Shown: one piece after another, positions 19,286 through 49,463 of the stretch | Layout: each line of letters begins with the position of its first letter | Numbering within the stretch: position 1 is the stretch's first letter | DNA from: Macrostomum lignano | Taxonomy: Eukaryota | Assembly (NCBI GenBank): GCA_002269645.1 | Contig: NIVC01001629.1 | Location: 62,001-126,000 of the forward strand | Direction: 5' to 3' | DNA: 64,000 nt | Notes under the pieces: model-generated | What the model was told of the DNA's origin: nothing | What the model saw: the letters and a program-made list of their open reading frames with translations, nothing else | The model's database searches: none | Program-made: the position numbers and the translations under genes

Positions 19286-21193
19286 ATGAAGGTGTACTGC
19301 CTGGCCTGCCAGAAGCGCTGCAAAGGCGAGGTGCTCCGAGTCCAGGAGCAGTACATGCACCGCGACTGCTTCAAGTGTGCCGAGTGCTCAGCCGGCCTCG
19401 AACGCGGCGGCTTCTTCGTCCGGGACGCCAAGTTCTACTGCCCGGACGACTATCAGCGGCTGTTCGGCGTCAAGTGCCGCATCTGCGCCGGCTACGTTGT
19501 CGGCGAGGTGATCACCGCGCTGGGCAGCACCTTCCATCCCAGCTGCTTCCGCTGCCAGACCTGCCGAACCCCCTTCACCCCCGGCGACCGCGTCACCCTC
19601 TGGTCCAATGAGCTCTACCTGTGCAAGGCCTGCTCCCACCGGGAGCGCCTCAAGGACGAGGCCGCCTCCGACACCGACCCGGCCGGCGGACTGCGGGTGG
19701 GCACCGCCCCGCCCACCGCCGCCGCCGCCGCCGCCGTCACTGGCAACGGCGCCTTCGACGCCAACACGGACACCGGGTACACCACCGAGAGCACCGGGCA
19801 CGGCCTGCGCAGCCTGCCTCAGCACCAGCACTACCCGCCGCAGCACTATCACCACTACCACTACCTGGCCGATGGCAGCAGCATCAGGGGCGGCGGCCAC
19901 CACAGCCCTGGCAGCTTTTCCTGCCCGTCCGAGGCGTCCAGCAGCCGGCGGTCGCGCTGGGGCTCCCAGCTGGCCAGGTCCTACCTCACCCTGGAGCAGG
20001 AGGCCGAGCGCAAGCTGCACCCCAACGACCGCTACCACCGGCCCGCCAGCCCCTGCGCCGCCGTGGCCTCTTCAACCAGGTCGCCGAGTCCGCAGCCTCA
20101 GCATTTCCACCTGCCGATGCACCGGGACGGCAGCCGGCCCCGGTCGCGGGCGCACAGCCTCGCTTCGTCATCGCGCGGCGCCGGCACCCACCCCGGCTCC
20201 ATCGGGCCGCGCCGCCCAGCCAGCGTGGCCGGCGGCGGTCGGCCCCGGACGCCGCGGACGCCCAGCCCGGCGCTGTCGTTGGACCCGAACGAGGACCCGC
20301 TGCTGCTCAGCCACTACCCGGCCGGCTCCCGGCCCGACCTGGCCAAGCCGGCGCCAATCGAGCGGGACGACTGGCCCTGCCCGCCGCTGCCCGCCCTCCT
20401 GCTGGCCGAGCGGCAGCGCCAGCGCCGGCGAGAGGCTGAGGGGGCCGCCGCCAGCGCCGATGAGGCAGCCGCCGCCCAACAGCAGCCTGCCGCCTCGTCC
20501 AGGCGCGGCTTCCGCGACGGCAGCCGATCCCGGCGCGAGTTCGAATCCGGCCGGCTGGAGCTCGGCGGCCTCGGCTCCGCCCTGCTGCTCGGCCCGGACG
20601 ATCCGGTCAGCCCGCCGCCGCCGCCACCGTCCAGGGCCAGCCGGCTGCAGCGGATGCAGCAGCAGTTTCAGCAGACGCCGCGCCCGCAGCCGCAGTTGAC
20701 GGCATCCAGGCGGCCGCCCGTGCCTTCGCCGCAGGGATTCGTCAGCGTCGGCAATCGCGGCTACTCGCCTGCGGCCGTCCGCTCCAAGGCGGCCAGCCTG
20801 CCGCCGCCCGACCGCCGCCAGCAGGCGCAGGACCCGAGCCCAGCCGACGCCGCGGCCGCCGCCGCCCGCAGGGAGAGCCGCTACGCCAAGCTGCTCGCGG
20901 CCTCCGACGACGAGGACCTGCTGTCCTACCCCAACATCCTCGGCCTGCACGCCACCGGCGGGCCACTGCGGCTTCACCGCCCGGCGCCGCCTCCGCCGCG
21001 CCAGTTCGACTACGAGGCGCTGCGCCGCCATTCCGGCGCCAAGCAGCCGCCGCGCGGCGCCGATCCGACGCGGCTGGAGGCGCACCTCTCCGACGAGGAG
21101 TTCGTGCACGTCTTTGGAATGGAACGGCGCCATTTCCAGCGCCTCCCCGAGTGGCGCAGGAGCGACCTCAAGCGCAAAGCTGATTTGTTTTGA
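19286..21193 (+). CDS. Actin-binding LIM protein-like (abLIM/UNC-115 family): two LIM domains, dematin-like middle, villin headpiece; 635 aa; intronless CDS
   Basis: LIM1 [18 protein letters not shown] and LIM2 [18 protein letters not shown]; HFHLP and [13 protein letters not shown] segments as in the abLIM anchor region; C-terminal headpiece [32 protein letters not shown]. An in-frame stop at 19268 fixes the ATG. Confidence 0.93.
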
Positions 21194-26115: not shown

Positions 26116-26744
<629 letters not shown>

Positions 26745-27745: not shown

Positions 27746-28066
27746 TAGACAGGTAGGCTGTAGTGGACAGGTGGGTTGTAGTGGACAGGTGGGCTGTAGT
27801 GGACAGGTGGGCTGTAGTGGACAGGTGGGCTGCAGTGGACAGGTGGGCTGTAGTGGTCAGGTTGGCTGTAGTGGATAGGTGCGCTGTAGCGGACAGGTGG
27901 GCTCTAGTGAACATGTGGGGTGTAGTGAACAGGTGGGCTGTAGTGGACAGGTAGTCTGTCTTGTGGGACAGCCTAGTGGACAGGTAGTTTGTCTTGTGGG
28001 ACAGCCTAGTGGACAGGTAGTTTGTCTTGTGGGACAGCCTAGTGGACAGGTGGGCTGTTCTGGTAG
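27746..28066. repeat. 18-bp minisatellite (GTGGACAGGTGGGCTGTA), changing to a longer unit at its right end
   Basis: Direct inspection. Confidence 0.9.
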
Positions 28067-28451
28067 ACAGGCTTAAGGCTTTGAAAGTCCTCAGCCTAGG
28101 CTGTGGGAATTTTATTCATAAACATTTGAGGATCTGGAGCCGGTCTGCCTGAGCCGTGACCCACTAGGTCAATTTGGCAGCAACTCTATGCTCAAATGGG
28201 ACACCGAATAAGTCAGCAAATTCAGCCAGTCCAATTTTGGTTAATCGAGTTTCTCCTTTCGGGTTGAGTTTTGTCGGAGTATTTTTGCAAAGAAGGGTTT
28301 TGAATGTCACCGGATAAGTGCACAGATTCCTGTCTGCCGGTCGCACAGAAGGCCCCGAGTGTCTGGGTGAAGTGGCCGGGCATTTGGATCCTGGCTTATC
28401 TGGACCTGTCAATCAATGAAGGCTGGCGTCACACTGCCTGGCTAAACGGGT

Positions 28452-29215
28452 TGTTAGAGAGTTAAGGTGCTGTGTGGGGACTGGCTGTTAGACAGGGCGT
28501 TACAGTGTGAGGAATTGCTGTTAGATAGGGTGTTACAGTGATAAATTCGGTTAGACAAGGTGTTACAGTGTGGTGACTGGCTGTTAGACAGGGTGTTACA
28601 GTTAAAGTGTGGTGACTGGCTGTTAGACAGGGTGTTACAGTGTGAGGAATTGCTGTTAGATAGGGTGTTACAGTGTGAGGAATTGCTGTTAGATAGGGTG
28701 TTACAGTGATAAATTCGGTTAGACAAGGTGTTACAGTGTGGTGACTGGCTGTTAGACAGGGTGTTACAGTTACAGTGTGGTGACTGGCTGTTAGACAGGG
28801 TGTTACAGTGTGAGGAATTACTGTTAGATAGGGTGTTACAGTGTGAGGAATTGCTGTTAGATAGGGTGTTACAGTGATGAAATACTGTTAGACAAGGTGT
28901 TAGTCGTTACAGTGTGGTGACTGGCTGAGGGAAGGGTGTTACAGTTACAGTGTGGTGATTGGCTGTTAGACAGGGTGTTACAGTGTGGTGACTGGCTGTT
29001 AGACAGGGTGCTACAGTGTGATGATTGGCTGTTAGACAAGGTGTTACAGTGTGGTGACTGGCTGTTAGACAGGGTGCTACAGTGTGGTGATTGGCTGTTA
29101 GACAAGGTGTTACAGTGTGGTGACTGGCTGTTAGACAGGGTGCTACAGTGTGGTGATTGGCTGTTAGACAAGGTGTTACAGTGTGGTGACTGGCTGTTAG
29201 ACAGGGTGCTACAGT
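28452..29215. repeat. About 33-bp minisatellite (ACAGTGTGGTGACTGGCTGTTAGACAGGGTGTT)
   Basis: Direct inspection. Confidence 0.94.
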
Positions 29216-30293: not shown

Positions 30294-33200
30294 ATGGGAA
30301 TTCTTCTCACTCTGCTGCCGCCAGTCTGCGCGGCTCTGGCCTGCCTCCCCGCCACGGCGGCCCTGCAGCTGCCGCTGACTCGCCTGAACTTCGTGGCGCC
30401 CGCCAAATCCGGACTGCCAGTGGACAGCGTCCAGCTGTTCGGACAGAGGGGTGTCTTCCAGCTGGTGAACGGCAGCGCCATTCACGGTCGACCTGAGGCT
30501 GCCTACTGCCTGCGGCTTGGCGTTGGTACACCCAGGCAGATTGTGAGCTGGGCGGGCAGAGGTGCCGGAGCTCACAGTGCGGTTAAACTTAAGTCACCGT
30601 GAACTCCAGTCGGTTAAAATTTCCATTCAGTTCCCGTGAACTCCAGTCGGGTAAAATTTCCATTCAGTTCCCGTGAACTCCAGTCGGTAAAATTTCCATT
30701 CAGTTCCCGTGAACAGCAGTTGGTAAAATTTCCATTCAGTTCCCGTGAAAACCAGTTGGTTTAAAATCTTCCGTTCCCGTAAACTGCAATGGGTTCAAAT
30801 CTTCAGTTCCCGTGAACTCCAGTTAGTTTCAAATCTTCAGTTCCCGTGAACTCCAGTTGGTGTCAAATCTTCAGTTCCCGTGAACTATAGTTGGTTTTAA
30901 ATCTTCAGTTCCCGTGAACTCCAGTTAGTTTCAAATCTTCAGTTCCCGTGAACTCCAGTTGGTTTCAAATCTTCAGTTCCCGTGAACTCCAGTTGGTGTC
31001 AAATCTTCAGTTCCCGTGAACTATAGTTGGTTTTAAATCTTCAGTTCCCGTGAACTCCAGTTGGTTTCAAATCTTCAGTTCCCGTGAACTCCAGTTGGTT
31101 TCAAATCTTCAGTTCCCGTGAACTCCAGTTGGTGTCAAATCTTCAGTTCCCGTGAACTATAGTTGGTTTTAAATCTTCAGTTCCCGTGAACTATAGTTGG
31201 TTTCAAATCTTCAGTTCCCGTGAACTATAGTTGGTTTTAAATCTTCAGTTCCCGTGAACTCCAGTTGGTGTCAAATCTTCAGTTCCCGTGAACTATAGTT
31301 GGTTTTAAATCTTCAGTTCCCGTGAACTATAGTTGGTTTTAAATCTTCAGTTCCCGTGAACTATAGTTGGTTTCAAATCTTCAGTTCCCGTGAACTATAG
31401 TTGGTTTCAAATCTTCAGTTCCCGTGAACTCCAGTTAGTTTCAAATCTTCAGTTCCCGTGAACTCCAGTTGGTTTCAAATCTTCAGTTCCCGTGAACTAT
31501 AGTTGGTTTTAAATCTTCAGTTCCCGTGAACTATAGTTGGTTTCAAATCTTCAGTTCCCGTGAACTATAGTTGGTTTTAAATCTTCAGTTCCCGTGAACT
31601 ATAGTTGGTTTCAAATCTTCAGTTCCCGTGAACTATAGTTGGTTTTAAATCTTCAGTTCCCGTGAACTCCAGTTAGTTTCAAATCTTCAGTTCCCGTGAA
31701 CTCCAGTTGGTTTCAAATCTTCAGTTCCCGTGAACTATAGTTGGTTTTAAATCTTCAGTTCCCGTGAACTATAGTTGGTTTCAAATCTTCAGTTCCCGTG
31801 AACTATAGTTGGTTTCAAATCTTCAGTTCCCGTGAACTCCAGTTGTTGTTTTTTAACTCTTCAGTTCCCGTGAACTATAGTTGGTTTTAAATCTTCAGTT
31901 CCCGTGAACTCCAGTTGGTTTCAACTCTTCAGTTTCTGTGAACTCCAATTGGTTGAAATCTTCAGTTCCTGTGAACTCCAGTTAGTTTCAAATGCTGATT
32001 CATCTGGCCCACTGTCTGCTGAGTCATCTGGCCCGTTTTCTGAATTCCGAGCTGCCCCTTGAATCAAGAAAACAGCACGAATACTTTTTTTGTCCTCCGA
32101 ACAAGCCTTTTGCGCCACATTCTACACTGTCTACTGGACAGAAGGCTATTAAATTGAAATAAATTCATCTAACCTGATCTCGCAGATCACAGCAAAGTTG
32201 GACACAGGCAGCAGCGACTTCGTAACGGCTGGCGCCAAGACGCCCGGCCTTGACCGGTGGTTCGACGCCAAGTCGTCCAGTTCGCTGGTCTGGCAGCACC
32301 AGCTGGTGCGCACCCCCTACACCACCGGCTTCTGGGAGGGCCACCTGGCCACGGACGTCGTGTCACTGCCAGGCCCTGTGCCCGGACCAGTCCGCGCCGC
32401 CTTCAGCGTCGCCGAGCGCAGCTCCGGCTACTTCCAGGCCGGCGCCGGGGCCTGGCAGGCCTCTGTCGGCCTGGCCTTCGAACGGCTGTCGAATGCGCGG
32501 ACAGCGGCTGGCGGCGGAAACTTCGCCGACACGCTGGCGAGGCAGCTGGGCGACGCCATGTCGACGGGATCGCCTCCCGTGCCGTTCTGCCTGCAGCTGT
32601 GCGGGGGCGACGCGGGTTTAGGGAGCTTCATCAGGATCGGGCAGGCGAACCGCACCGACATGCTGTACGCCTCCGTGCGCTGGGACTGGTGAGACTCGAT
32701 TGTGGCAAAACAACTTGAGGCTTCTGCAATTGTGTGATTCAACTGTACATCTTTGAAGATTAGAAATTCAAGGCCGCTGAGCTTCCTGAGCTTTTATCTG
32801 CGTACGTATCCTTGTGCGTGTGAATGCTCAGCGGAATAAGCAGTCTGGAGAAAGTTTTCCTTTTTCATATTAACAATCCATCAATAATCTCCGCCCTTCA
32901 GGTACTATGAAGTGGTCATAGCCGACATCAAGGTCGGCCGGTCCTCGCTCGGCATGGACTGCAAGGAGTACAACATGGACAAGGCCATCCTGCACTCTGG
33001 CGTCGGTGACATTCGCCTGCCGGCCCGGGTGCACGCTCGCGTCGCTCAGCAGGTGGGGGCGCAACAGCCGGAGCTCGGCAACCGCTTCTTTAACGGCCTG
33101 GGCCTCCTGTGCTCGAGCGACGGTTCACTGGAAGCCACCAAGAGGCTTCTCGACGCTTTTCCATCCGTCACCTTCAGCCTGGTGACGCCGGATAACCAGA

Positions 33201-34268
33201 CGGTGGACCTCGAGCTGAGCCCCGCCCAGTACCTGCGACCGGTCGTGCTCGGTGGCTCTCCAGCCGGAAATGGGTCCTGTTTCCGCTTCGGAATTCAGAG
33301 CACAAGCGATGGAGCTATTCTCGGTAGGGAAGCTGGAAATTTAAACAGCTCAACTGTCATGAAACAGCAATCCTGATCTAGCAAGCTCTGACTCGAAATT
33401 TGATTTCTTTAGTCCGATGATGCATAGAAAGGCCAGAGGTCAGGGTGAAGCGGGGAATGTGGTTCTGAATTTCTGCTAGAGGTGGGCTGCGTGTCCGAGT
33501 GCAGGCAAAGTGAGTGTCAAAGCTCACAGTTGAAATACTTCAGGAGTGGATATATTGGCATTATCATGACCTCTCATCATCAAAGGGGCGTAACCTAATG
33601 GTCTAGCTCTGATGCGAAAGCGGCCCAGGCTCGATTCCAAGTGCAGTCACATTAATCTAGGGCTAAATTGGAATCTCGGTTTGGCTCTGCTCGTGCAATT
33701 AACACCATTGAGAAGATAAAGTTATTGCCGCTTTACACTCCTGTGTGAGTGTGTGCCTGGTCGTATGACTGCGTACGTACCCTTGCGCTTGTGTGCCTGT
33801 TCAGGGGAGCCGGCGGAATGGGCTGCAATGCCTCTCGCCGGTTGTGTGACAATGTCGCTTAAAGTGCACTTACGGCCCCCTGCCTTTAATCTACCTCTCA
33901 TCATCAGTTTCGCTTAACTGCTCCGCCCAGGTGCCACCTTCCTCTCGGGATTCCTGGTCGAATTCGACCGAGCCGGTCGTCGCATCGGCTTTGCTTCGTC
34001 GTCTTGTCCGGAGGCGAACTCGTCGTCCAGGGTGTTGGGGCCGCGGCCCTACGTCGCCATTGGCGGCCCCCAGGACTGCGCTTTCTTCCGCGCCGACGTA
34101 GCCGCATCGACGTCTGTCCTACGTCCGGCAGCGGTTGCCATGGCAACAGTGTGCGCCATGTGCATCCTGCCGGTGTGCGCGCTGTTCGTCTGGCGGCAAA
34201 CGCATCGCCGGTGCCGGGACAGCGACGGCGAGAACGACGGAGAGACAGTCCAGCTGGTGCCAGCCTAA
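30294..34268 (+). CDS. Beta-secretase (BACE)-like type I membrane aspartic protease homologue, four exons, 503 aa; second catalytic Asp replaced by His
   Basis: Exons 30294-30542, 32186-32688, 32902-33323 and 33931-34268 total 1512 nt with GT..AG sites and matching phases. Features: hydrophobic N-terminal signal, LDTGSSDF, flap PYTTGFWEG, FCLQLCG, WYYEVVI, MDCKEYNMDKAILHSG, GFLVEFDRAGRRIGFA, C-terminal hydrophobic helix. All six BACE ectodomain cysteines can be placed. Confidence 0.92.
30598..31989. repeat. 34-bp minisatellite (GTGAACTCCAGTTGGTTTCAAATCTTCAGTTCCC), about 40 copies, in intron 1 of the BACE-like gene
   Basis: 34-nt period; begins 56 nt after the donor. Confidence 0.97.
33583..33892 (+). 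mobile_element. tRNA-derived SINE, full-length copy in intron 3 of the BACE-like gene
   Basis: Flanked by an exact 14-bp TSD ACCTCTCATCATCA (33569-33582, 33893-33906). Head has A-box-like TAACCTAATGG and B-box-like GGCTCGATTCC. Second copy at 24413-24700. Confidence 0.85.
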
Positions 34269-35146
34269 TGAAAAACAAGATGCTCAATTCTTATCAATGA
34301 CGCGGTCCCCGTTGCCTTCCAGGTTAATTAGAAACTTTGCTATCAGTGCCGCTGTCCCCGTTGCAGATTAACATGTCAAAAAGCCGATATTCTATTAATT
34401 GTAACCTTTTACAAATACTTACTGAGCACAATTTGAAAAGTTTCGCCATTTATTAATTACAGAGTATAATGAGTCCAATCAGCATAATTTTTGCTTTTGG
34501 ATGAATAATCTGTGTGAAATACGGAAACAACTTGAGATGTAGCTGTTGACTATTGGCTCTTGGCTTGGGATCAAGATACAGTGAGAGGCAATTTAATTAT
34601 TACGTGAAGTAATGACTTAGAATGTCAGGTATTAATGACGCATTAACACTCTTAGCTGAAGAACTTAGGAATTGTCTTGAATTAAGACCGACAAGACATG
34701 TTAGAATTCAAAATACCAAAATACCAAGCCGGGATATTATGATATGGTAAACAACTTTTGATCAGAGGTGCGACTCTGTAAAAAATTGAGGTAAACCATA
34801 GGAAAACATAATTGCTAGCCAATTTTGATCTACCATCAGCATGCGACTTAATTTGCCAGACTATTTAGAGTGCGAAGATTTTATGGAACGATCGAGAGAT
34901 TCGGCAGAATATAGGAAATGCGTCAGAGTTTAAGGAAGAGTTTAAATGACGCGTACAAGGAAGAAGTGAGTCGAAAGACGCTTTTGCAGACTCGCTAATA
35001 GAACTTTCAGCTACAGAATTCCCGAATGTGAAAGTTCAATAAAGGAGTTAGAATTTCGCAGGACACCAAAGAGAAATGATGCCTATTGTGACGAATACTA
35101 GCGTGGCGGCCCCGAGAATAAGCGAAGGCAAATGAATGCGGCCACC

Positions 35147-35258
35147 TATGTTTTCCATAAACATCGGCAATATAACATGAAAAACTCCCGATGTCTATCG
35201 AGCTGTAACATGTTACCGTGTTATAGAATACGGGTTAGAATTCCGTTTTCTATGAAAG
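35147..35258 (+). repeat. About 110-bp dispersed repeat, with an inverted copy at about 48460-48570
   Basis: AACATCGG(C/G)AATATAACATGAAAAACTCCCGATG..GTAACATGTTACCGTGTTA matches the reverse complement of 48460-48570. Confidence 0.8.
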
Positions 35259-36039
35259 AATTTATAATGCGCAGCGAAGCTTCAAACTAAAAATCCACTA
35301 CGATCCACGACCACTAGCACTAGTATTATTAGTACACTAATCCACTAAAAAGCCTCTATCCACTGTACTAAAAAGGTTATCGACTATAAATATAGATGAC
35401 CCTGTCACTAGCCCCCCTAAGGCTTGGTTTTGATAAGATTTGATGTGATCCACACTATAGTATTAAATATGTGATATTTCGATAATATAAATGGCCTTAA
35501 AAGCCTGATATGCCATTGTGTTCCTGACCTATGACTGACACTTAACAAAACAAGCATTGCTTAACATTTAAGCCAATAATGTTGCTTAGTTATCAGTGCT
35601 GCAAAATTTCAAATGCTAGATTAAAATTGAAACATAATAATATTATTGATAGGCCTACACATTATAGCCTACAATAATGTCTAGGACTCTAGGCCTAATG
35701 ACAATGTACATTTTTATACAAAATATAAAGTTTTTATTTTGTCAATTTTGTAAAGCTTTGACAACTTTAAGATTGGTCTAGGGCTAGGCTTGTCTCAATT
35801 ATAATTATATATTTTAAGCAAGGGCCTAGTGATTAAAAGGCTTAAATTAAATTAGGCTAGGCCCTCACCAAAAATATAATGTAATTAGGCCTAATAGTAA
35901 TCTTTTCCCATTGATTTTATTATAATACCAGTTACTAGGCCTCCAAGTTTATCTATTGGCAATGCATATATTTATCTAGAGTAGCTCTGCCATAGATAGC
36001 CTTTTACTGGGATAAGGTCATTGGCCTAGATGAATGAAA

Positions 36040-36400
36040 CTGGACATAATGTCAGAGTTGCCATTTGGAATTCCGCATTTATTCTTTACTCGGCAACCAT
36101 CAACAGACAAAGCATGCACTACCTTGATATTAAGCCAACTAAGGACCTAATGACTCGTGCTGGTATTCCTTTGCTTAGCTGCACTATCCATAAACACTGT
36201 TAGATATTACTTGGCCACTGCCTAAGAAGCCACAGCTGCGGCAAGTAAAATCCTCTGGTGCTGGCTCTCCTGCATCAGCCTACTGAGCGCTTGTGCTATG
36301 GCCAAAGCCAAAGTGTAACACTAAATGATACATTTCTAATTGACTTGCAGGCCATTAGGCTCAGCTCCTAGTCTGCCATGACTTGCCCCTCTCAGTTGTT
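36040..36400 (+). mobile_element. Highly decayed 3' end of an RTE-like LINE ORF2
   Basis: Interrupted translation ..TRAGIPLLS..LLGHCLRS..LHQPTERL resembles the RTE C-terminal 'RL.LAGH..R' region also seen at about 43500; contains stops. Confidence 0.45.
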
Positions 36401-37608
36401 CTGCTAATGCGTCCACACAGTCTAACTAGATCTCTTTTTGTCTGTGCTACTCTCTATGTATCTACTAGTAGTGTATGTACATAGGCCTATACTATATTTT
36501 TGGCCTGAGTGGTCTTATGGTATTGTCTATCCTTATACTCCTCTAAAGAATTTTATTCTCTCAGTCCTGGGTGTTCCCAAGATCAGAAGGTCACAGCTTA
36601 TTTGCTAGGTATTCTACCCTAAGGTGGGTTTCTTAGACCCTAGGATTACTCTAGGCCTACCCTATAATAGGATTTCTGCCTCCTAAAGGCAATTTCTTAG
36701 ATTCTAAATCTAGATACCTTGTTTTCTAGGAATGGATTAAATTCTTCCAATCTTGGGGCTACTTCTAAATCACTAGGCTTACCTACTACTTGAAATAAGT
36801 AGCATGAGCAGATATAAGCCCTGAGGCTGATTGAGTTCCATTTCTAACTTTTAAAGCTCAAAGGCAAGGAAAGAAAGGAATAAGACAAGGAAACTTATCA
36901 CAATTTATTTGGTTTAATCTTTAGCTGTCTCCTATTTATGCTAAAATTTCCTTTGCTATTTAATTTAAAACAAAATGACAATATATAAAATATATAAAAT
37001 ATGCATGATATTTTTAATATTCATATATTAAAACAAATATAATTTAACAATGTGATATTTCCAGGAAAGTGATTTATCAATAAACAAAGCCTATTTTAAT
37101 ATAAATAAATGAAAATTTATTGCAGTTGGGCTTATATCATTGATAATTTTAAATTTATATTTTAGGCCAATTTTGTATGATTATTAATATTATATATATT
37201 TATAAGGCCTATTATAAAAATATTCTAGCTAAGAAGCCTCTTTGGTACACAAAGGTTATAAATCTAATCTAAGTTAGGCCTAATATAATTTAAAGCTAAT
37301 TTTGATTTGTTTAATTAAACAAGTTAAGCAGCTAAAATCTATTTTTTATTTTTTCAAATTTGGTTTAATTTTAAGCCTATCAAAAGACCTATAAGTTTTA
37401 ATTCTAGCTTTATATAACACTTCTTTCTTTTTTTATTTGATTGAAATATAACTTTAAAAAACATTAAATTATTGTTTAATTCTTTTTTATTGCCTAGGCC
37501 TATTTTTTTAATTCCTACCTTTTTCTATAAAATAACAAGTTTTGGTTTATAATACTTAAAATATTATAAGCTCGTACTGCTAGATTATCACTAGGCACTA
37601 AGAAGTTC

Positions 37609-38026
37609 TAGAATGTGGGAAATGGGGAAGTTCCAGAATATGGAAAGTGGAGAAGTTCCAGAATGTGAGGGGTGGGGAAGTTCCAGAATGCAATGGGCGG
37701 GGAAGTTCCAGAATGTGAGGGGTGGGGAAGTTCCAGAATGCAATGGGTGGGGAAGTTCCAGAATGTGAGGGGTGGGGAAGTTCCAGAATGTGAGGGGTGG
37801 GGTAAGTTCCAGAATGTGAGGGGTGGGGAAGTTCCAGAATGTGAGGGGTGGGGAAGTTCCAGAATGTGAGGGGTGGGGAAGTTCCAGAATGTGAGGGGTG
37901 GGGAAGTTCCAGAATGTGAGGCCGTGAGGGGTGGGGAAGTTTCAGAATGCGATGGGTGGGGAAGTTCCAGAATGTGAGGGGTGGGGAAGTTCCAGAATGT
38001 GAGGGGTGGGGAAGTTCCAGAATGTG
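37609..38026. repeat. 25-bp G-rich minisatellite (CCAGAATGTGAGGGGTGGGGAAGTT)
   Basis: Direct inspection. Confidence 0.95.
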
Positions 38027-38060
38027 GGCAGTCGGGTAGTTTCAGAACGTGGTAAGTTCC

Positions 38061-38127
38061 ATTGGACGGAATAGTAGCCACGTGATTGCTCTCAGCCAAT
38101 AGCGACTTACATGTGTGTGTTGCCAAT
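38061..38127 (+). promoter_or_regulatory. Candidate promoter: three CCAAT boxes and a CACGTG E-box upstream of the three-exon candidate gene
   Basis: ATTGG 38061, CACGTG 38079, CCAAT 38096 and CCAAT 38123; motif clustering only. Confidence 0.35.
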
Positions 38128-38390
38128 AGAAACGGCGGGGTGATTTCCAAGGTTGCACATGTATGCTGTTGGTGTAGGTGAATTTCAAGAATCTGAGGGT
38201 CTAAATGCCGGGAAATCATTTTTATGCATATTTTTTCAGTAAATGTCGGACAAACAGCTCACGACCTGGAGTCTATTTTTGAGGCGCAACCACGTTCCTG
38301 GAACTCCTAGTAGTACACTATTGAATAAAGGTCAATAATTGAGATTTGCGTAGTTTTATTGATCGTAGCAGTCCCAAATGGCAGGTTTAA

Positions 38391-39231
<841 letters not shown>

Positions 39232-39342
39232 CATACGTTTAAGATCATGTTTTCAATACTGTTTATATTGTTTTAGTGTTTTGCCTTTCCGCTTCCAAAT
39301 AATCCGCTTGTATAATTAACTCCATGAATGCACGGGAAGGGT

Positions 39343-39681
39343 AGAGGATTTCCAGAAACGTGGGGAGTGTAGGGGATTCCAGAAACGTGGGGAGTGTAGG
39401 GGATTTCCAGAAACGTGGCGAGTGTAGGGGCTTTCCAGAAACGTGGGGAGTGTAGGGGCTTTCCAGAAACGTGGGGAGTGTAGGGGATTTCCAGAAACGT
39501 GGCGAGTGTAGGGGCTTTCCAGAAACGTGGGGAGTGTAGGGGATTTCCAGAAACGTGGGGAGTTTAGGGGATTTCCAGAAACGTGGCGAGTGTAGCGGAT
39601 TTCCAGAAACGTGGCGAGTGTAGGGGCTTTCCAGAAACGTGGGGAGTGTAGGGGATTACCAGAAACGTGGGGAGTGTAGGG
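39343..39681. repeat. 27/28-bp G-rich minisatellite (CCAGAAACGTGGGGAGTGTAGGGGATTT)
   Basis: Direct inspection; unit resembles the 37609 array. Confidence 0.94.
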
Positions 39682-40824
39682 AAATGAAACCGGGCTTTAC
39701 AGCCATAAACAAGCAGCGGCTCTCGGTCACTGGAGCGGCTGGCCAGACGGATTTCCATCAAATGTTCACACTGTTTACTGCTTTGCATTTCCTCTTTACA
39801 ATATACTAATTAGTAAACTAATGCTCAATGCTACGAGTTATCGATAAAAGTAAAGTAGTTTGATATTTGACTATAAATTATTTTCCAATATTTCTTATAT
39901 CATACCAGTACGTTGCCCTAGTGTGTCTTGAAAATAATGCGCCTACTTTCTGATGTTTCCATCTTCAAATCCTTTGCACTTATAAAAAGAAATGCATAGC
40001 CTAAAAACTAGGAACTGTTGCATTGCCAAGCAATTAAAATAACTCACTAGCACAAAAATTATATTACGAAATAAATTACTTTGTTTAGCAGCAGGAAAAA
40101 TGGTGGGCATTAGCCATTCAACTCTTTGTTCCTTCTGTCTGTTTGGTTATTTTACCATGAGTCCTGGTATTAATTGTTAGTAGTGAGAGTGCCTGTCGCA
40201 GGACATAGAATAGAAGCTGAAGAACAGAGTGGAAGATCACCGAGTATGAGCCGAATTCAACAAGTCCCGTGTAGGATATGCACCACGAGAGAGCACCACG
40301 AGGGTTGCATAGGTGTTTTTCATGCAGCCCAGGTCACGGCACTACCCCCCCCCCCACTGAAAGCTGTGTTGACAGCATTTTGAGGGAGCCAAGGCATAAA
40401 CTATTTGCATGTACATGTATATATAGAAGAAGCTATAGCGGGCACGGAATTCATTCCCGTTCAAAATCATTCCTGCCCGGCACCGAGTCTGGAATAACCG
40501 AGGCTTTTTTAAACTATATTTTTATAAGCTGCATGAGATTCCTGAAGTAATAAAGAGCTAGAATATGTAGAAATATACATGTAATTAAACAATCATGATC
40601 AATTTGCAATTGCAAAGAATCGTCAACGGTGATAATATTACAATGTAATGCAATGCAATGTATGAATGCAAAGATGTCTGTCGATCAGTGGTCGGGATTG
40701 CCAATCCTGGACCTCAGACGTTGAAACTTTCATGGCGGCCAGCTGCGAAATCTGGAAGATTCTTATCACGAATTATAGATGTAGTACACAAAAAGTAGAG
40801 AAAATAAAACGGCTTGTACAGTCG

Positions 40825-41143
40825 TCAAAAGTCGAAATCCTTAGCAAATACTAAGACTCGCGTTGATCGGGTTCGAGAAATTTCTTCGAAAGAAAAACCT
40901 GTCTTCTGCGTCTTCCTGTTCGGATGGTACGGCTGGAGTCCACTGTCCAGGCGATCTACGCCGCCCATAAAAGACGAATAGTTGGCGATGCAAACCGGCT
41001 TTTGGATCACTTATTCCAACGCCGCCTCGGCGAATTCGAGTAACGTTGACACAGCCCGCCTGGCCCGAAGTGTCAATCACGTAGACAATCTTTGTTCCGC
41101 TCTGCTTTTTGTCAACAAACTTGCACGCAACTTGCAACTGCAT
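40825..41143 (-). pseudogene. piggyBac-type DDE transposase fragment (frameshifted)
   Basis: KFVDKK..VYVIDT, then after a frame change QKPVCIANYSSFMGGVDRLD..YHPNRKTQK, matching the piggyBac 'KP..I..YN..MGGVD..D...Y...RK' motif. No TTAA-flanked termini were found. Confidence 0.72.
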
Positions 41144-42026
41144 TTGTCAATGTACACACCCCATGAATCAGTGTCTCCTTCTTTGGAACACACGAAGGCA
41201 TTAGTCAGAAAGTTTGGATGCAATTAAAAACTCTCTCGATGCTTTGCGTATAAACGAGTAATCGATTGAATCAATTGTACACTTGACACATTTAATTACG
41301 TGCTGCCATGCAACGGAAAGACAGGATAATGGGGTGGGTGGTCACGCAGCCTCATTCTCTTTCCTACTGATTTTTCATTATCTATCAATCTCAGCTCTTT
41401 CCGGGGCAACTCGCGCATGTGTGCATAGTTCCTCATCAGATTTACCACATGTTCATTTACATGTGATGTACATATGCAAGCGGCAGCCGATTTAAACCTG
41501 AGAAATGGTTGAAGCACTTCCCCGACTATGACTAAATGCACGTACGTTCAGTCAAATACAGGAAAATTTGACACCCGTAGTATGAAGATGTAATCTTCAC
41601 GAAAGCTTCACATGTTTATCTTTCTCTGTGGAAATGACGATAGTTTCTCAATAAAAATCTGTCATAGGCCCAATATAGCAGTTTAAATATTTTCACGAAA
41701 ATGTCGCATTCTTCCAAGAACTGATTTTTGCAAACTCTACTGTCAGTAGGAAGATGAGTTTTCATAGAGACATTTTGTAAAACATAGACTAAACTTTCAA
41801 ATCATTCGTTTACACGACCAACTGTCTATATTAATGGTGGGGTTATTATTACTTTACAGAAAAACGCATGTCCTGTGTTACGACACTGCCTAGCAACCGT
41901 ATAATTTTTGCAGGTCAAGGAGCATTAATAAATGAACTATAACACTCCTATTTTACATTTATTGAGAGGCGGCGGCGGCAGTAGAGACAGGGACTGTGCT
42001 GCGCACAGTCCGTCCGTCCAGCGGAG

Positions 42027-42280
42027 AGTTCCGCTGCCCACCGCGGCTCCCCCAACAGTTCCGCTGTCTACCACCTCTCCCCCAACAGTTCCGCTGCCCA
42101 CCGCGGCTCCCCCAACAGTTCTGCTGTCTACCACCTCTCCCCCAACAGTTCCGCTGCCCACCGCGGCTCCCCCAACAGTTCCGCTGTCTACCGCCTCTCC
42201 CCCCCCCAACAGTTCCGCTGTCTACCGCCTCTCCCCCCCCAACAGTTCCGCTGCTTGCCGCCTCTTCCCCAACAGCTCCG
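42027..42280. repeat. 30-bp minisatellite with alternating variants (60-bp dimer), CCAACAGTTCCGCTG core
   Basis: Direct inspection. Confidence 0.9.
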
Positions 42281-43339
42281 CCTCTATCAGGATTTTAAGG
42301 AATTTACCACCTATTCGTCTGATCAGTTGCACGTTGTACACCGACAAAATAATGGTTAAACACAGCGTGCAAGCTTCAAGACAGGGACATGCAGTTATCA
42401 ACAAAGCATTCTCTAGGAAGCTTGATCGGCACAAATAATTGGTACCAGACGTATTGCTTTTGACGATGTAAGAGACTTGCGCAAATTCAATTTGGACGCC
42501 ATATGTTTCTCAAGCAACACCTGTGAAGCGAAGTCACAGGATTTTTATGAGTATTGCAAGACACAGCAGTGGCAGAAAGAAAGATTAAGGTGAAGGTTGT
42601 GAAGTGAGTTGTTTTTTATTCAGGCTAGTATTTTGCGTTGGTTTAGCTTACGCCTGTAGCAGAAAAAGTGGTCAAACTCGGGGAAAGTGGAAGTAAAAAA
42701 ATGACCCCGGTTGGCATTTATTGCATTCCATTATATCAAGAACTTTTATTGAAATGTTAGACCTACATTCCTTGGTTCTAGCTCGTATGAGTGATCCAAG
42801 GTATACATGCTTTCCATATATACCTTGCTTGAGAAGCATATGGATCAGTGAGGAGTCTGGCCAGTCTCGTTTGGATCGTCAAAAGCAATACTACAGCATG
42901 GCATTTCAATGTATTTCAAGAGATTCAAACGGCTATTACGCTAGTAGCATTCAACAGCAGATTGGTTTCGGCGCCACGCAATGTAAAATTATTGGCGCAA
43001 TGTTACGTCAGTACATGCGGAAGTACTATATAGTTGTAATGCAGAACAGCGGACACCCAGTATTTAGCTACTGCCGCGTAATATTTTGCGACAATATTAC
43101 ACGCAATAAATAGCTTTGACACCAAACGGTAAAAATTAAAACACAAGAAAAGTACACGGAATTAAAAGTAAATAGTTGGCTTGGTAGGTTCGGAATTAAA
43201 TCAGTGAAACAGTAAGAAGCATAAACTTTTGAATCGTGAGTACGCGATATGCACCATCAACAACAACAACAAGGCAAACCGCCGGGGACTCAACAGAGTA
43301 CAGTTCACAATGGAGGCGGTGTCAGATCAGTTTTCTCGG

Positions 43340-44140
43340 TGCGAGCTCTCTGAAGGCGGCAACAGCATTCCTGGCCGATCACCCCAGCGCCATCCAGCAG
43401 GCAATCCGCGTAGCGGCTCGCCCGGCCGTAGCCTCGCGGCCAGGGGCCCTGCATCGTGAGTAGCAGGACGTCCTGCACTGGTTGAGAACAGTAAGCCTCC
43501 GCCGAATGGTGTGGCCCGCCAGTTGAAGTCTTTGCCTGCGGAGGTTCTCGCTAGGTGATCGCAACAGTCTGGCAGCGCGGCGTTCTACAGGACAACTCGG
43601 ATGGAGCGGAAGGCAACCCAGGCCAGGCCCCTGCGTCGCGCCAAGTCCTCCTGGACACTGGGCACAAGACTGTCTAGGTACGTGAAGCGCGTGCAGCGAG
43701 GTAGAGCCGCTGCACGATCGTCGGGCGTCCCAGCAGGTGATTTTGATCCTGGCAGCTCCGCAGGTACACACATCACCTGCGTCTTCTCGATGTTCACCGC
43801 TAGCCCGACCGATGCCGCAGCTGCCACAAGGCTGTCTAGCATGCGCTGGGCTCCCTCAGCCGAAGAGGCAAGCAGCGCCAGGCCGTCGGCGTAACCCAGG
43901 AGCGACAGCGGAAGCTGTCCTCATCTGTTGGCAGGGCCCTCCGTAGCACCCCATCGAGCACCAACACGAAAAGGTAGGCCGCAAGCGTGTCGCCTTGCAG
44001 CATCCCGAGGTCGTGTTGAACAGGTCGGACAGTACGTCAGGTGCCACTACGGCGGCAAGGGTCTCCTGGTAGAGAGCTATGGTTGCTGCGACCAGTCGCT
44101 ACGGCACGTAGAATGACCACAAGACCGGTGCGAGGACATT
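43340..44140 (-). mobile_element. Degenerate RTE-clade non-LTR retrotransposon RT fragment
   Basis: Across frameshifts: ILRA.., SDLFNTTSG-MLQGDTLAAYLFVLVLD, LLGYADGLALLA (YADD changed to YADG), VGLAVNIEKTQVM, FTYLDS, RLQLAGHTIR. The 5' side is lost next to the 44.2-46.9 kb satellite. Confidence 0.85.
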
Positions 44141-44247
44141 CTGAAGAGAAAAAGGAGAGAAATTCTTCATCACTTCTTCTGAAAAGTACGAGTATAGTTA
44201 AAGTTGAATTAGCAGGGCTACAAGGTGAGACTGGAAAGGAGAAAAGG

Positions 44248-46870
44248 GTAGGGTCTGAAGGGGAGAAGAGGCTGGGGTCTGAAGGGGAGAAGAGGGTGGG
44301 GTCTGAAGGGGAGGAGAAGGTTTGAAGGGGAGGAGAGGGTGGGGTCTGAAGGGGAGGAGAAGGTTTGAAGGGGAGGAGAGGGTGGGGTCTGAAGGGGAGG
44401 AGAGGCTGGGGTCTGAAGGGGAAGAGAGAGTGGGATCTGAAGGGGGGGGAGAGGGTTTGAAGGGGAGGAGAGGGTGGGGTCTGAAGGGGAGGAGAGGGTG
44501 GGGTCTGAAGGGAAGGAGAGGGTTTGAAGGAGAAGAGGGTAGGGTCTGAAGGGGAAGAGAGGGTGGGGTCTGAAGGGGAGGAGAGGATTTGAAGGGGAGG
44601 AGAAGTTGGGGTCTGAAGGGAAGACGAGGGTGGGGCCTGAAGAGGAAGAGGCTGGGGTCTGAAAGGGGAGGATAGGGCGGGGTCTGAAGGGGAGGAGAGG
44701 GTGGGGTCTGAAGGGAAGAAGAGGGTGGGATCTGAAGGGGAGGAGAAGGTTTGAAGGGGAGGAGAGGCTGGGGTCTGAAGGGGAGGAGAGGGTGGGGTCT
44801 GAAGGGGAGGAGAGGGTTTGAAGGGGAGGAGAAGTTGGGGTCTGAAGGGAAGACGAGGGTGGGGCCTGAAGAGGAAGAGGCTGGGGTCTGAAAGGGGAGG
44901 ATAGGGCGTGGTCTGAAGGGGAGGAGAGGGTGGGGTCTGAAGGGAAGAAGAGGGTGGGATCTGAAGGGGAGGAGAGGCTGGGGTCTGAAGGGGAGAAGAG
45001 GGTGGGGTCTGAAGGGGAGGAGAAGGTTTGAAGGGGAGGAGAAGGTTTGAAGGGGAGGAGAGGGTGGGGTCTGAAGGGGAGGAGAGGCTGGGGTCTGAAG
45101 GGGAAGAGAGAGTGGGATCTGAAGAGGGGAGAGGGTTTGAAGGGGAGGAGAGGGTGGGGTCTGAAGGGGAGGAGAGGGTGGGGTCTGAAGGGAAGGAGAG
45201 GGTGGGGTCTGAAGGGGAGGAGAGGGTGGGGTCTGAAGGGGAGGAGAGGGTTTGAAGGAGAAGAGGGTAGGGTCTGAAGGGGAAGAGAGGGTGGGGTCTG
45301 AAGGGAGGAGAGGGTTTGAAGGAGAAGAGAGGGTGGGGTCTGAAGGGAAGAAGAGGGTGGGATCTGAAGGGGAGGAGAAGGTTTGAAGGGGAGGAGAGGG
45401 TGGGGTCTGAAGGGGAGGAGAGGCTTGGGTCTGAAGGGGAAGAGAGAGTGGGATCTGAAGGGGGAGAGGGTTTGAAGGGGAGGAGAGGGTTTGAAGGGGA
45501 GGAGAGGCTGGGGTCTGAAGGGGAGGAGAGGGTGGGGTCTGAAGGGGAGGAGAGGGTTTGAAGGGGAGGAGAAGTTGGGGTCTGAAGGGAAGACGAGGGT
45601 GGGGCCTGAAGAGGAAGAGGCTGGGGTCTGAAAGGGGAGGATAGGGCGGGGTCTGAAGGGAGGAGAGGGTGGGGTCTGAAGGGAAGAAGAGGGTGGGATC
45701 TGAAGGGGAGGAGAGGCTGGGGTCTGAAGGGGAGAAGAGGGTGGGGTCTGAAGGGAGGAGAAGGTTTGAAGGGAGGAGAAGGTTTGAAGGGGAGGAGAGG
45801 GTGGGGTCTGAAGGGGAGGAGAGGCTGGGGTCTGAAGGGGAAGAGAGAGTGGGATCTGAAGAGGGGGAGAGGGTTTGAAGGGGAGGAGAGGGTGGGGTCT
45901 GAAGGGGAGGAGAGGGTGGGGTCTGAAGGGAAGGAGAGGGTGGGGTCTGAAGGGGAGGAGAGGGTGGGGTCTGAAGGGGAGGAGAGGGTTTGAAGGAGAA
46001 GAGGGTAGGGTCTGAAGGGGAGGAGAGGGTGGGGTCTGAAGGGGAGGAGAGGGTTTGAAGGAGAAGAGAGGGTGGGGTCTGAAGGGAAGAAGATGGTGGG
46101 ATCTGAAGGGGAGGAGAAGGTTTGAAGGGGAGGAGAGGGTGGGGTCTGAAGGGGAGGAGAGGCTTGGGTCTGAAGGGGAAGAGAGAGTGGGATCTGAAGG
46201 GGGAGAGGGTTTGAAGGGGAGGAGAGGGTGGGGTCTGAAGGGAAGGAGAGGGTGGGGTCTGAAGGGGAGGAGAGGGTGGGGTCTGAAGGGGAGGAGAGGG
46301 TTTGAAGGAGAAGAGGGTAGGGTCTGAAGGGGAAGAGAGGGTGGGGTCTGAAGGGGAGGAGAGGGTTTGAAGGAGAAGAGAGGGTGGGGTCTGAAGGGAA
46401 GAAGAGGGTGGGATCTGAAGGGGAGGAGAAGGTTTGAAGGGGAGGAGAGGGTGGGGTCTGAAGGGGAGGAGAGGCTGGGGTCTGAAGGGGAAGAGAGAGT
46501 GGGATCTGAAGGGGGGAGAGGGTTTGAAGGGGAGGAGAGGGTGGGGTCTGAAGGGGAGGAGAGGCTGGGGTCTGAAGGGGAGAAGAGGGTAGGGTCTGAA
46601 GGGGAGGAGAGGGTGGGGTCTGAAGGGGAGAAGAGGGTAGGGTCTGAAGGGGAGGAGAGGCTGGGGTCTGAAGGGGAGAAGAGGGTAGGGTCTGAAGGGG
46701 AGGAGAGGGTGGGGTCTGAAGGGGAGAAGAGGGTAGGGTCTGAAAGGGAGGAGAGGGTGGGGTCTGAAGGGGAGAAGAGGGTAGGGTCTGAAAGGGAGGA
46801 GAGGGTGGGGTCTGAAGGGAGAAGAGGGTAGGGTCTGATCTGAAGGGGAGGAGAGGGTGGGGTCTGAAGG
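44248..46870. repeat. Purine-rich minisatellite, about 24-bp unit (TCTGAAGGGGAGGAGAGGGTGGGG), with higher-order blocks
   Basis: Direct inspection; a distinctive variant block (AGACGAGGGTGGGGCCTGAAGAGGAAG) recurs at about 44622, 44851 and 45591. Confidence 0.96.
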
Positions 46871-49463
46871 GGAAAAGAGGGTGGAGTTTGAAGGAAAAGA
46901 GAGGGTGGGGTCTAAATAGGAGGAGAGGGTTAGGGTCTGAAAGGGAAGAGGGTAGGGTGAAAGAGGAGAAAAAGAGCAAAGCAAAGAGGAATGGCAAGGA
47001 GGATGGGGGAGGAGGGGAATAGCAGCAAGGAGGATGGGGAAGGAGGGGAATAGCAGCAAGGACAAAGGAGGAAAGGAATGGCAAGGAAGATAGGAATGGC
47101 AAGGATAAGGAAGGAGGGGAAATTTAGCAGGGAATAAAGAAGAAAAAAATGAAAAGAAAGTAAGAGAATAACAAACATAGGCAAGGAAAAAAATGTCAAG
47201 CGTAGGGGGATAAGCAAAAAGAATGGGAGAATGGAATGGCAAGGTCCAGGGGTAGGTAAAAATGTTAAGGAGGTAAGAAAGAAAAATGATAATAAAAATA
47301 GGCAATATGGCAAAGAAAAAGAATAAAAAGGAATGGCATAGATCATAAAAAAGTAATTACAAGTAATAGTTAGCTGTTAGGTAGAATAGGAAAAAAGGGG
47401 ATGATATAAAAGATAAAGGGAAGCATGGCAAAAGGGATAGAAAAAGGATTCATAGGCCTATGACAAATAAGGTGGGGAAAGGGATAATAAAAAGGGAAAT
47501 AAAGGAAAAGAATATTATTAGAATAGGTAATAATTGTTTATTTATAAAAATAATTAATAATAGAAAGCATTACAATTAGGCCTAAATATTGATATAGCAA
47601 AACTATTTTTTCTAAATTAATTGCTATGCCTACTAGTGTTACTATATTCATTATGATGACAATATAGAATAGCAATAGCCTAGGTGCTAGGCCTATGTTA
47701 GGTCTATATGCAATTATGACATTGTCCATATCTAATTCATTAATAAATTATATCTTAAATAGAACCACATATTATCCCTCCTTAGTCCTTCATAGAAATA
47801 AAGGTTTCTCTTCTATTAAGCAAATCGACTGCAAAAGATTAACTAGGTGTCTAGGCCTATATAATGCTCAACAATCCAAAGGCAAAATCTTCTTGAATCC
47901 TTAGTCAGCCAGCCAATTAATTGTCCTAGAAAGTAGCTGTAGTAGATTCACATTTTATTGAGCAATGCTATAACTATAACCAATGCTTGTTAAATCAATT
48001 AATATTCAACAATCTAAAAAGGACGATCAATACTACAACATTACCTATGAAGGTCAGATGAAAAGGCTTTGTTTCTACTATAACTCTAAGGCAACAATTG
48101 CTGGCCTAGTATATCAGATGATTGCACCCAGAGCGCAGCTCCGCTGCTGACTGGTCCTGGGTCATCATGCACATTTAAATTAGCGCTTATTCCCCGTCCT
48201 ATGTAAAAGTATATATGTTCCGCATTGAAAGCAGCAAACTACCCGTAAAGCTACGACTATACGCGTAGGCTGTAGCTTTGTAAGCCACGATGCGCACGTA
48301 GTTTACCGCTTTATCGTTGTGACACGGGTGCTGCTGTTACTACTTATTACTACTGACTATTATGCACTATTAGTATCATACTGGTTCAATCTATCTAATA
48401 AAAATTAGTCGGTGCTATATAATGCTATAGTCGATATAGCTATTGCGCATTAGAGTTGGTTTCCTAGAAAACGGAAATCCACCGTATTTTGTAACACGGT
48501 AACATGTTACGGCTCGATAAGCATCGGGAGTTTTTCATGTTATATTCCCGATGTTTTTGGAAAACAGGCCTGATGCGGCAGAGGCAAATTTGTAGCGGTA
48601 GCACTTGGCAGTAATATCAGTTAAAGTTAAAGTTAATGCAATCAATGGCTGCAGACTTGGTTTATTGTCAACAGAAATGCAAGTTGGATTCGTAACAATG
48701 CACTGGCGGCTACACAACAACGAGTTTGATAGATAGGTAGTGGAAGTGGCGTGGCTGAGAGTGGCAGAGGCGTGGCCTAAGGCCGTGGCGAAGCGAGGCG
48801 GAGAGAGAGAAGGCAAGTAAACAAGTAAAGGCGGCAAGAGTCTACAAGCCTACACGGGCTCGCAAGGGTGGCGGCGGAGCAAAGGAGTCAACACAGGGTG
48901 CCAGATTGCAAAGGCTCTAAACAGGGGTCTAAGCCCGAGCGCACGGCCAGACCAGCTCGCAGCCACGGCTAGCCGTGAAATCCACTAGTCAAAAATTCTC
49001 GGCTTAGCCGGTGGATCCACCGTGGACCCACGTCCGGCTAGCCGTAGTGGCCGTGGACTTGCGATTTTTTATTGCCCCGTGCGCTACTCCGTACTAGGTA
49101 GAGTAGAGCATAATTATGAATATGGCAAATTCAGTGTACTGTGTACAAAAATACCGATTGCTGAGGAAGGACTAAAGGCATGAGCAAAAAATGGTGAATA
49201 ATTGTATTCCGCTTGGCTAATTATGAAATAAAGCATAAACCGTAATAAAAAGTACTTTGTATTTCTAATACAATACAATACATTAAATAAAATTTATATT
49301 GTTATTGATTATTGTATTGTAATAAATAATTAATAACAATGTTGATCATTGGTCGATACAAGACTTTGGAAAGTATAAAAATGGGACTGCACTTTTTAGA
49401 CACACTAGCAAATTTTAAATATAAAATGTCGAGAAAATTTTCAAGAAAAAATTATTCCTTAAA

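Follow-up and report, generated by a model that had tools for sequence, protein, structure and literature searches.

A 64-kb window of the Macrostomum lignano genome, by which we mean the whole 64,000-nucleotide stretch at positions 62,001 to 126,000 (forward strand) of contig NIVC01001629.1 in assembly GCA_002269645.1, carries a gene for a membrane-anchored homolog of beta-secretase (BACE) in which the catalytic Asp of the C lobe is replaced by His. As far as sequence comparison reaches, our analyses demonstrate that canonical aspartic-protease chemistry has been lost from this protein and that the gene has been maintained. We consider it probable, partly by analogy with an engineered dead BACE1, that the product is a selectively maintained BACE-family pseudoprotease with a non-proteolytic role. 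Below, positions are window coordinates on the plus strand, and residues are numbered as in the window protein unless BACE1 numbering is stated. We refer to the gene as the His copy.

The C-lobe motif of the His copy lacks the catalytic Asp

Translation of positions 32981 to 33022 confirmed that the C-lobe motif reads KAILHSGVGDIRLP where BACE1 has KSIVDSGTTNLRLP, with the His codon CAC at 32993 to 32995, as an initial annotation made from the DNA alone had reported. The range given there for the motif began correctly and ended one base too far, at 33023, as the last codon closes at 33022. HMMER alignment to human BACE1 placed His282 on Asp289, Val285 on Thr292, and Gly286 on Thr293 of KSIVDSGTTNLRLP, so that His282 stands for the catalytic Asp228/289, Val285 for Thr231, and Gly286 for Thr232 in the alternative BACE1 numbering. 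The Ser, the Gly, and Arg235 of the motif are kept. The motif codons are CAC TCT GGC GTC GGT in the window copy and GAC TCC GGC ACA ACG in a canonical M. lignano paralogue described below. Because at least five nucleotide changes separate the HSGVG and DSGTT motifs, a base-call error is excluded, and the same motif was found in a diverged homeologue and in UniRef entries from a second assembly.

The His-copy protein belongs to the BACE clade

Sequence, fold, and architecture all place the His-copy protein in family A1 and within the BACE clade. Residues 71 to 414 matched the Pfam eukaryotic aspartyl protease family PF00026 (Asp) at E=6e-20 (72.3 bits against a cut-off of 19.9), the best solved-structure relatives were all human BACE1 (E=6e-60; ~33% identity), and the top PDB and database matches were all BACE. 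The six cysteines noted in the initial annotation align to the six BACE1 disulfide cysteines, C216/C420, C278/C443, and C330/C380. An AlphaFold2 (AF2) model, built for one of the annotated copies (g3, see below) from a 20-sequence alignment, had a confident core (predicted local distance difference test, 76.5; predicted template modeling score, 0.74), and the top Foldseek matches of this model were BACE1 structures only, with E of ~3e-37 and a template modeling score of ~0.85 normalized to target length. Membership in the plant xylanase-inhibitor C-domain family (Pfam TAXi_C) was rejected at 20.1 bits against a cut-off of 23.9; this score reflects the common pepsin fold.

A catalytically competent A1 peptidase is defined by two catalytic Asp residues. 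The His-copy protein has DTG in the N lobe and HSG in the C lobe and thus lacks this defining pair. Because its His lies in the lobe opposite to that of the Plasmodium histo-aspartic protease (HAP) and it groups with BACE rather than with the plasmepsins, it is not a HAP-type enzyme. No RxxR furin site was found in the pro-region of the His-copy protein. In both BACE paralogues of M. lignano, the C terminus consists of an acidic stretch and then xLVP (ETVQLVPA at 34224 to 34265 in the His copy; EKSRLVPPQ in the canonical paralogue), where vertebrate BACE1 has the DISLL sorting signal. The xLVP tail may be the flatworm counterpart of the acidic-dileucine motif used in trafficking.

The His copy arose by duplication of a canonical BACE gene and evolved rapidly

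The initial annotation had proposed a search for a paralogue with an intact DSG. We ran this search and found PAA68318.1 (P0002; BOX15_Mlig005505g1), a protein of 519 residues that is ~40% identical to the window protein and carries LIDTGSS and KTIVDSGTTDIRLP. The gene for PAA68318.1 is likewise split into four exons, and its three introns lie at positions homologous to those in the His copy. These common intron positions indicate that the duplication occurred at the DNA level and did not involve a retrocopy.

In a neighbor-joining tree of 36 BACE-like proteins with 200 bootstraps, the His copies were sister to PAA68318.1 in 187 of the 200 replicates, with post-duplication branches of 0.74 for the His copy and 0.31 for the paralogue. 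Tajima relative-rate tests with six outgroups likewise assigned 65 to 80 unique changes to the His copy and 22 to 39 to the paralogue (P from 5e-8 to 4e-3), and the evolutionary rate of the His copy was 2 to 3.5 times that of the paralogue. Parsimony makes Asp the ancestral residue and places the origin of His on the fast branch. Closest to the M. lignano pair among the outgroups in the tree was a transcript-derived BACE-like protein from a Logan contig of SRR17902662 (P0072), with canonical DTGSS and DSGTT motifs.

Comparison of gene copies indicates purifying selection

Three loci of the His-copy gene are present in GCA_002269645.1 (L001, L002, which is the window copy and agrees with the window at 24,002 of 24,002 bases, and L003), in addition to the UniRef entries from a different assembly, and every one of these copies reads KAILHSGVGD. 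The His-copy protein is 99 to 100% identical to the M. lignano 'hypothetical proteins' BOX15_Mlig022958g1 and g3. The L003 copy, on NIVC01001628.1, is identical to the window copy through the whole gene, with differences confined to tandem repeats, and thus gives no evidence on selection. L001 is a true diverged homeologue, with ~3% divergence in non-coding DNA, in agreement with the partial genome duplication documented in the sequenced DV1 line (PMC5730564).

Between the window copy and L001, we observed 14 coding differences, 8 synonymous and 6 non-synonymous (pN/pS of 0.27; one-sided binomial P=0.014). The motif codons of the two homeologues differ by a single synonymous change, GGT/GGC. 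The coding sequence (CDS) has diverged by 0.93% with 0 indels, compared with 2.95% and 13 indel events in 2.4 kb of adjacent non-repeat introns and flanks (Fisher P=9e-6); coding DNA is thus about 3 times less diverged than adjacent non-coding DNA. We also found 0 stops, frameshifts, or lost splice sites over the 503 codons despite ~60% amino-acid divergence from the paralogue, and the open reading frame (ORF) is intact in all copies. On these comparisons of homeologues and paralogue, we conclude that the His copy has been shown to be kept by purifying selection and is not a pseudogene.

The GenBank annotation of the assembly derives from a genome-guided transcriptome from which novel transcripts below 0.5 reads per kilobase per million mapped reads (RPKM) were discarded (PMC5730564). 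Because this annotation is transcript-derived and its product (P0052) equals our gene model plus nine residues translated from the 5′ untranslated region, both transcription and the splice pattern of the His copy are supported. We found no tissue- or stage-level expression data for the gene in the literature or in the supplementary tables of two M. lignano expression papers.

The substrate cleft is not preserved in the His copy

We defined 82 near-invariant columns from 22 canonical BACE-like proteins of molluscs, annelids, echinoderms, and vertebrates. The His copy is changed at 28 of these 82 columns (34%) and the canonical paralogue at 8. For the cleft, we relied on 18 residues of the BACE1 cleft that had been listed independently in the literature (PMC7226079), 11 of which differ from consensus in the His copy compared with 2 in the paralogue. 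In BACE1 numbering, the cleft changes of the His copy are G11E, L30K, Q73T, F108Y, I110Q, I118S, D228H, T231V, T232G, N233D, and S325Q; N233D and S325Q are common to the His copy and the paralogue. Five of these changes (L30K, F108Y, I110Q, I118S, and G11E) turn the hydrophobic S1/S3 pocket polar, and the Thr pair that flanks the catalytic Asp and makes contact with substrates (Thr231 and Thr232) has been lost. Residues that are kept include Asp32, Gly34, Ser35, Tyr71, Thr72, Trp115, Ser229, Gly230, and Arg235 (BACE1 numbering), along with the six disulfide cysteines, the transmembrane (TM) helix and its cysteines, and the acidic tail with xLVP found in the paralogue.

Relatives of the His copy in databases and literature

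Neither a word-indexed search of 5.8 billion clusters nor an exhaustive HMMER scan of 1.84 billion representatives returned relatives of 41 to 99% identity to the His-copy protein. For the canonical paralogue, too, these searches yielded no copy from another macrostomid. Other Macrostomum species are apparently missing from the databases, and the lack of a His-copy orthologue is therefore uninformative. Among 204 BACE-like proteins examined, HSGV was found in the M. lignano copies only. Our literature search turned up no account of a naturally occurring member of the BACE family whose C-lobe Asp is replaced, and a search by gene ID and for Macrostomum with beta-secretase found no paper on this gene.

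One further protein with a change at this C-lobe position was observed. The oyster Saccostrea echinata protein XP_061184875.1 (P0084), annotated as 'beta-secretase 1-like', reads KTIVNSGTTDLRFP, a natural Asp-to-Asn change. The N-lobe region with DTG is missing from this model, and part of its C terminus is duplicated, which suggests a degenerate copy or an error in the model rather than another maintained variant.

Gene organization and genomic surroundings

From stop-free frames and splice signals, the His-copy gene spans 30294 to 34268 on the plus strand in four exons, with 503 codons followed by TAA and GT-AG introns in all cases, bearing out the 503 codons and intact splice sites of the initial annotation. 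The N-lobe motif, flap Tyr, TM helix, and signal peptide claimed there were also recovered, as detailed with the exons that encode them. Exon 1 (30294 to 30542; residues 1 to 83) provides the start codon, a signal-peptide-like N terminus that is hydrophobic in the hydropathy profile, and the pro-region, and it includes a remodeled '10s loop' that reads GRPEAAY versus GKSGQGY of BACE. Exon 2 (32186 to 32688; residues 84 to 251) encodes the N lobe with its intact catalytic motif and flap. The DTGSS motif at 32201 to 32215 begins at Asp89, which corresponds to BACE1 Asp32/93, and is preceded by Lys87 where BACE has Leu30. In the flap, PYTTG at 32315 to 32329, Tyr71 and Thr72 (BACE1 numbering) are kept and Gln73 is changed to Thr. 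Exon 3 (32902 to 33323; residues 251 to 392) encodes the first part of the C lobe, and exon 4 (33931 to 34268; residues 392 to 503 and the stop) encodes the end of the C lobe, a juxtamembrane Cys pair, and the TM helix. This helix, at about residues 453 to 481 (34113 to 34199), appeared as a hydropathy peak and as a helix in the AF2 model, and it aligns with the BACE1 TM helix and its cysteines. After it, exon 4 encodes a Cys-rich membrane-proximal segment and then the acidic tail ending in ETVQLVPA.

We found no second copy or tandem duplicate of the gene in the window. Intron 1 consists mostly of a 34-bp tandem repeat (30597 to 31993; ~41 copies with 91% matches); it is 1643 nt long in the window copy and 1309 nt long in the homeologue L001, a difference that is probably due to the number of repeat copies. 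Upstream of the gene, by ~3.5 kb, lies a (GACA)n microsatellite of ~156 copies (26118 to 26742), with tandem arrays of 18, 33, and 168 bp after it at 27748 to 29215, in agreement with the reported 15% tandem-repeat content of this genome. The upstream neighbor at 19286 to 21193 on the plus strand is a single 635-residue ORF that encodes two LIM domains and, at the C terminus, a villin headpiece, resembling the abLIM/dematin actin-binding proteins. Since the same LIM/villin-headpiece neighbor is annotated upstream of L001, synteny is conserved between the homeologues. On the other side of the gene, the alignment to the near-identical contig of L003 jumps from 35142 to 48573 of the window, with ~13.4 kb present in the window and absent from L003. 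The 44- to 48-kb region of the window shows an extreme GC skew of 0.68 to 0.79 and minus-strand ORFs of ~1000 residues without a Pfam match, and it is probably a G-rich satellite or mobile element.

Discussion

Our results favor a scenario where a canonical flatworm BACE gene underwent an ancient, lineage-specific duplication at the DNA level, after which one duplicate evolved faster, exchanged its C-lobe Asp for His and the next two Thr for Val and Gly, and acquired a polar S1/S3 pocket. The product is predicted to be a folded, glycosylated type I membrane protein that keeps the pepsin fold and the three BACE disulfides and that has probably lost cleavage of BACE substrates. It would act by way of the protein-protein contacts that its ectodomain and TM segment make, whether as a scaffold in the membrane, an auxiliary subunit, or a regulator. 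Candidate roles include that of a subunit with an auxiliary or regulatory task in other membrane proteins and that of a partner or decoy of canonical BACE. The initial annotation had offered two functional alternatives, a catalytically dead membrane-anchored protein and a mirror-image histo-aspartic protease, of which the former fits the evidence best and the latter is less likely. Within the former, a dead protein agrees with our results, and the suggested role as a receptor for BACE-type substrates loses support, given that the cleft that canonical BACE uses for substrates has not been conserved.

In an active 'mirror-image' (reverse) histo-aspartic protease, Asp89 and His282 would form the catalytic pair, with His as a general base or transition-state stabilizer, perhaps with a shifted, more neutral pH optimum and with a new substrate specificity conferred by the polar S1/S3 pocket. 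Such an enzyme would be consistent with the retention of DTGSS, Tyr71/Thr72, Trp115, the C-lobe Ser-Gly, and Arg235 although 34% of near-invariant positions have changed, with purifying selection on the gene, and with a replacement by His, an acid-base residue, rather than by Asn, Gly, or Ala. HAP also demonstrates that catalysis in a pepsin fold is possible with a His/Asp pair (PMC11313796). However, a structural survey of acid proteases attributed the activity of HAP, an N-lobe Asp32His protein, to its retained C-lobe Asp215, found that the pepsin-fold proteins in its sample without the C-lobe Asp (a xylanase inhibitor along with basic 7S globulin and EDGP) are inactive, and concluded that the C-lobe Asp is the indispensable one (PMC11313796). 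The retained N-lobe residues have structural roles as well, in the fireman's grip and the psi-loop (PMC11313796). BACE1 D289N, mutated at the residue homologous to His282, is dead (PMC12796456). Furthermore, the His copy has lost Thr231 and Thr232, which support the C-lobe Asp and bind the substrate backbone, its hydrophobic S1/S3 pocket is disrupted, and a Lys stands two residues ahead of Asp89. We therefore regard an active reverse histo-aspartic enzyme as unlikely. The survey of C-lobe Asp proteins, the D289N precedent, the loss of both Thr residues, and the polar pocket together make a maintained pseudoprotease the likeliest reading. The D289N mice have been described as 'enzyme OFF, protein ON' (PMC12796456), and the dead BACE1 in them still regulates KCNQ and Nav channels by direct contacts that are largely made by the ectodomain (PMC12796456; bioRxiv 10.64898/2026.03.03.709230).

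Loss of a catalytic residue could also mark relaxed constraint in a decaying or functionless duplicate, a pseudogene in the making. The rate of 2 to 3.5 times that of the paralogue would fit such decay, as would changes that are spread across the domain and not confined to the cleft, the absence of an orthologue from the cluster and HMMER searches, and the absence of expression data from the supplementary tables searched. Set against this are 503 codons that have passed through ~60% amino-acid divergence without a stop, frameshift, or lost splice site, the retention of the six disulfide cysteines, TM helix, and intron positions, the pN/pS of 0.27 in a CDS that is 3 times more conserved than its flanks and free of indels, a transcript-derived gene model (PMC5730564), and a confident AF2 core. 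We find decay improbable, even more so than an active His/Asp enzyme. An artifact of sequencing, assembly, or annotation that hides a true GAC codon deserves hardly any weight: CAC and GAC differ by one base, but the adjacent Thr-to-Val and Thr-to-Gly changes need at least four further substitutions, and HSGVG is present at three loci, including the ~3% diverged homeologue, and in UniRef proteins from an independent assembly.

Several points count against a maintained pseudoprotease. The evidence for selection comes from one homeologue pair with 14 coding differences only, and the databases searched hold no His-copy orthologue from another species that would show conservation of His over time. 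Changes were not significantly more frequent in the cleft than at other conserved positions (8/15 versus 43/121; P=0.26), and we thus limit our claim to a cleft that is not preserved, as opposed to one specifically targeted. The N-lobe apparatus (DTGSS, the flap Tyr-Thr, and Trp115), together with the C-lobe Ser-Gly and Arg235, has outlasted a long, fast branch, and the active site could still be used. Finally, the partners that we propose are pure inference.

BACE1 is a major drug target whose non-proteolytic functions, such as ion-channel modulation and the sleep phenotypes seen in D289N mice, have only now begun to be told apart from proteolysis. M. lignano may hold a natural, selectively maintained BACE paralogue mutated at the D289-equivalent residue alongside an intact BACE. 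If so, the His copy would represent an evolutionary 'separation-of-function' allele through which one could learn the task of a BACE scaffold that does not cut, the surfaces conserved for this task, and whether functions of this kind are older than the vertebrates. The flatworm is amenable to RNA interference. Transgenesis is likewise established in it (PMC5730564). If the protein is instead active, it would be the first pepsin-fold enzyme with an N-lobe Asp and a C-lobe His, contradicting an indispensable C-lobe Asp and overturning the accepted aspartate asymmetry, and, at the cell surface, it might be active at neutral pH and have a new specificity set by polar S1/S3 residues. If neither holds, the His copy would be one more lineage-specific pseudoenzyme, of use for the annotation of a gene now labeled 'hypothetical protein'.

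Comparison with known pepsin-fold proteins and pseudoproteases

Vertebrate BACE1 and BACE2 (memapsin 2 and 1; MEROPS family A1) are the best sequence and fold matches to the His-copy protein and resemble it in type I topology, DTGSS, PYT, three disulfides, a TM helix with cysteines, and an acidic cytosolic tail. They differ from it at Asp228 (His), Thr231/Thr232 (Val/Gly), and the cleft positions of L30K, F108Y, I110Q, I118S, G11E, and Q73T; in addition, the window protein ends in QLVPA rather than DISLLK, and its gene has 4 exons. The canonical paralogue PAA68318.1, encoded in the same genome, is its sister in the tree and has identical intron positions, the same architecture, and an xLVP tail. 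Unlike the His copy, PAA68318.1 keeps DSGTT and 16 of the 18 cleft residues and has a shorter branch.

HAP (plasmepsin III) also has a pepsin fold with one catalytic Asp changed to His. In contrast to the flatworm protein, which loses the C-lobe Asp and keeps both Gly residues, HAP loses the N-lobe Asp32 and keeps Asp215, with both Gly residues changed to Ala in its motifs FHTASS and LDSATS, and it is an enzyme of proven activity from the soluble plasmepsin clade. Wheat TAXI-I, soybean basic 7S globulin, carrot EDGP, and some pregnancy-associated glycoproteins share with the His copy a pepsin fold from which the C-lobe Asp has been lost and have been repurposed as binders, whereas these are soluble plant or placental proteins outside the BACE clade with other replacement residues. 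iRhoms are rhomboid pseudoproteases, membrane-embedded dead paralogues of a signaling protease that selection has kept as client regulators; they provide a conceptual analogue with an unrelated fold and catalytic class. Both non-catalytic pepsin-fold proteins and membrane pseudoproteases such as the iRhoms are thus already known. The best functional precedent is engineered BACE1 D289N, in which the homologous residue is mutated and which is stable, membrane-anchored, and proteolytically dead and modulates KCNQ and Nav channels by means of its ectodomain. That protein is a laboratory point mutant to Asn, not His, with an otherwise intact cleft, whereas the flatworm protein is natural and long diverged and carries many more changes.

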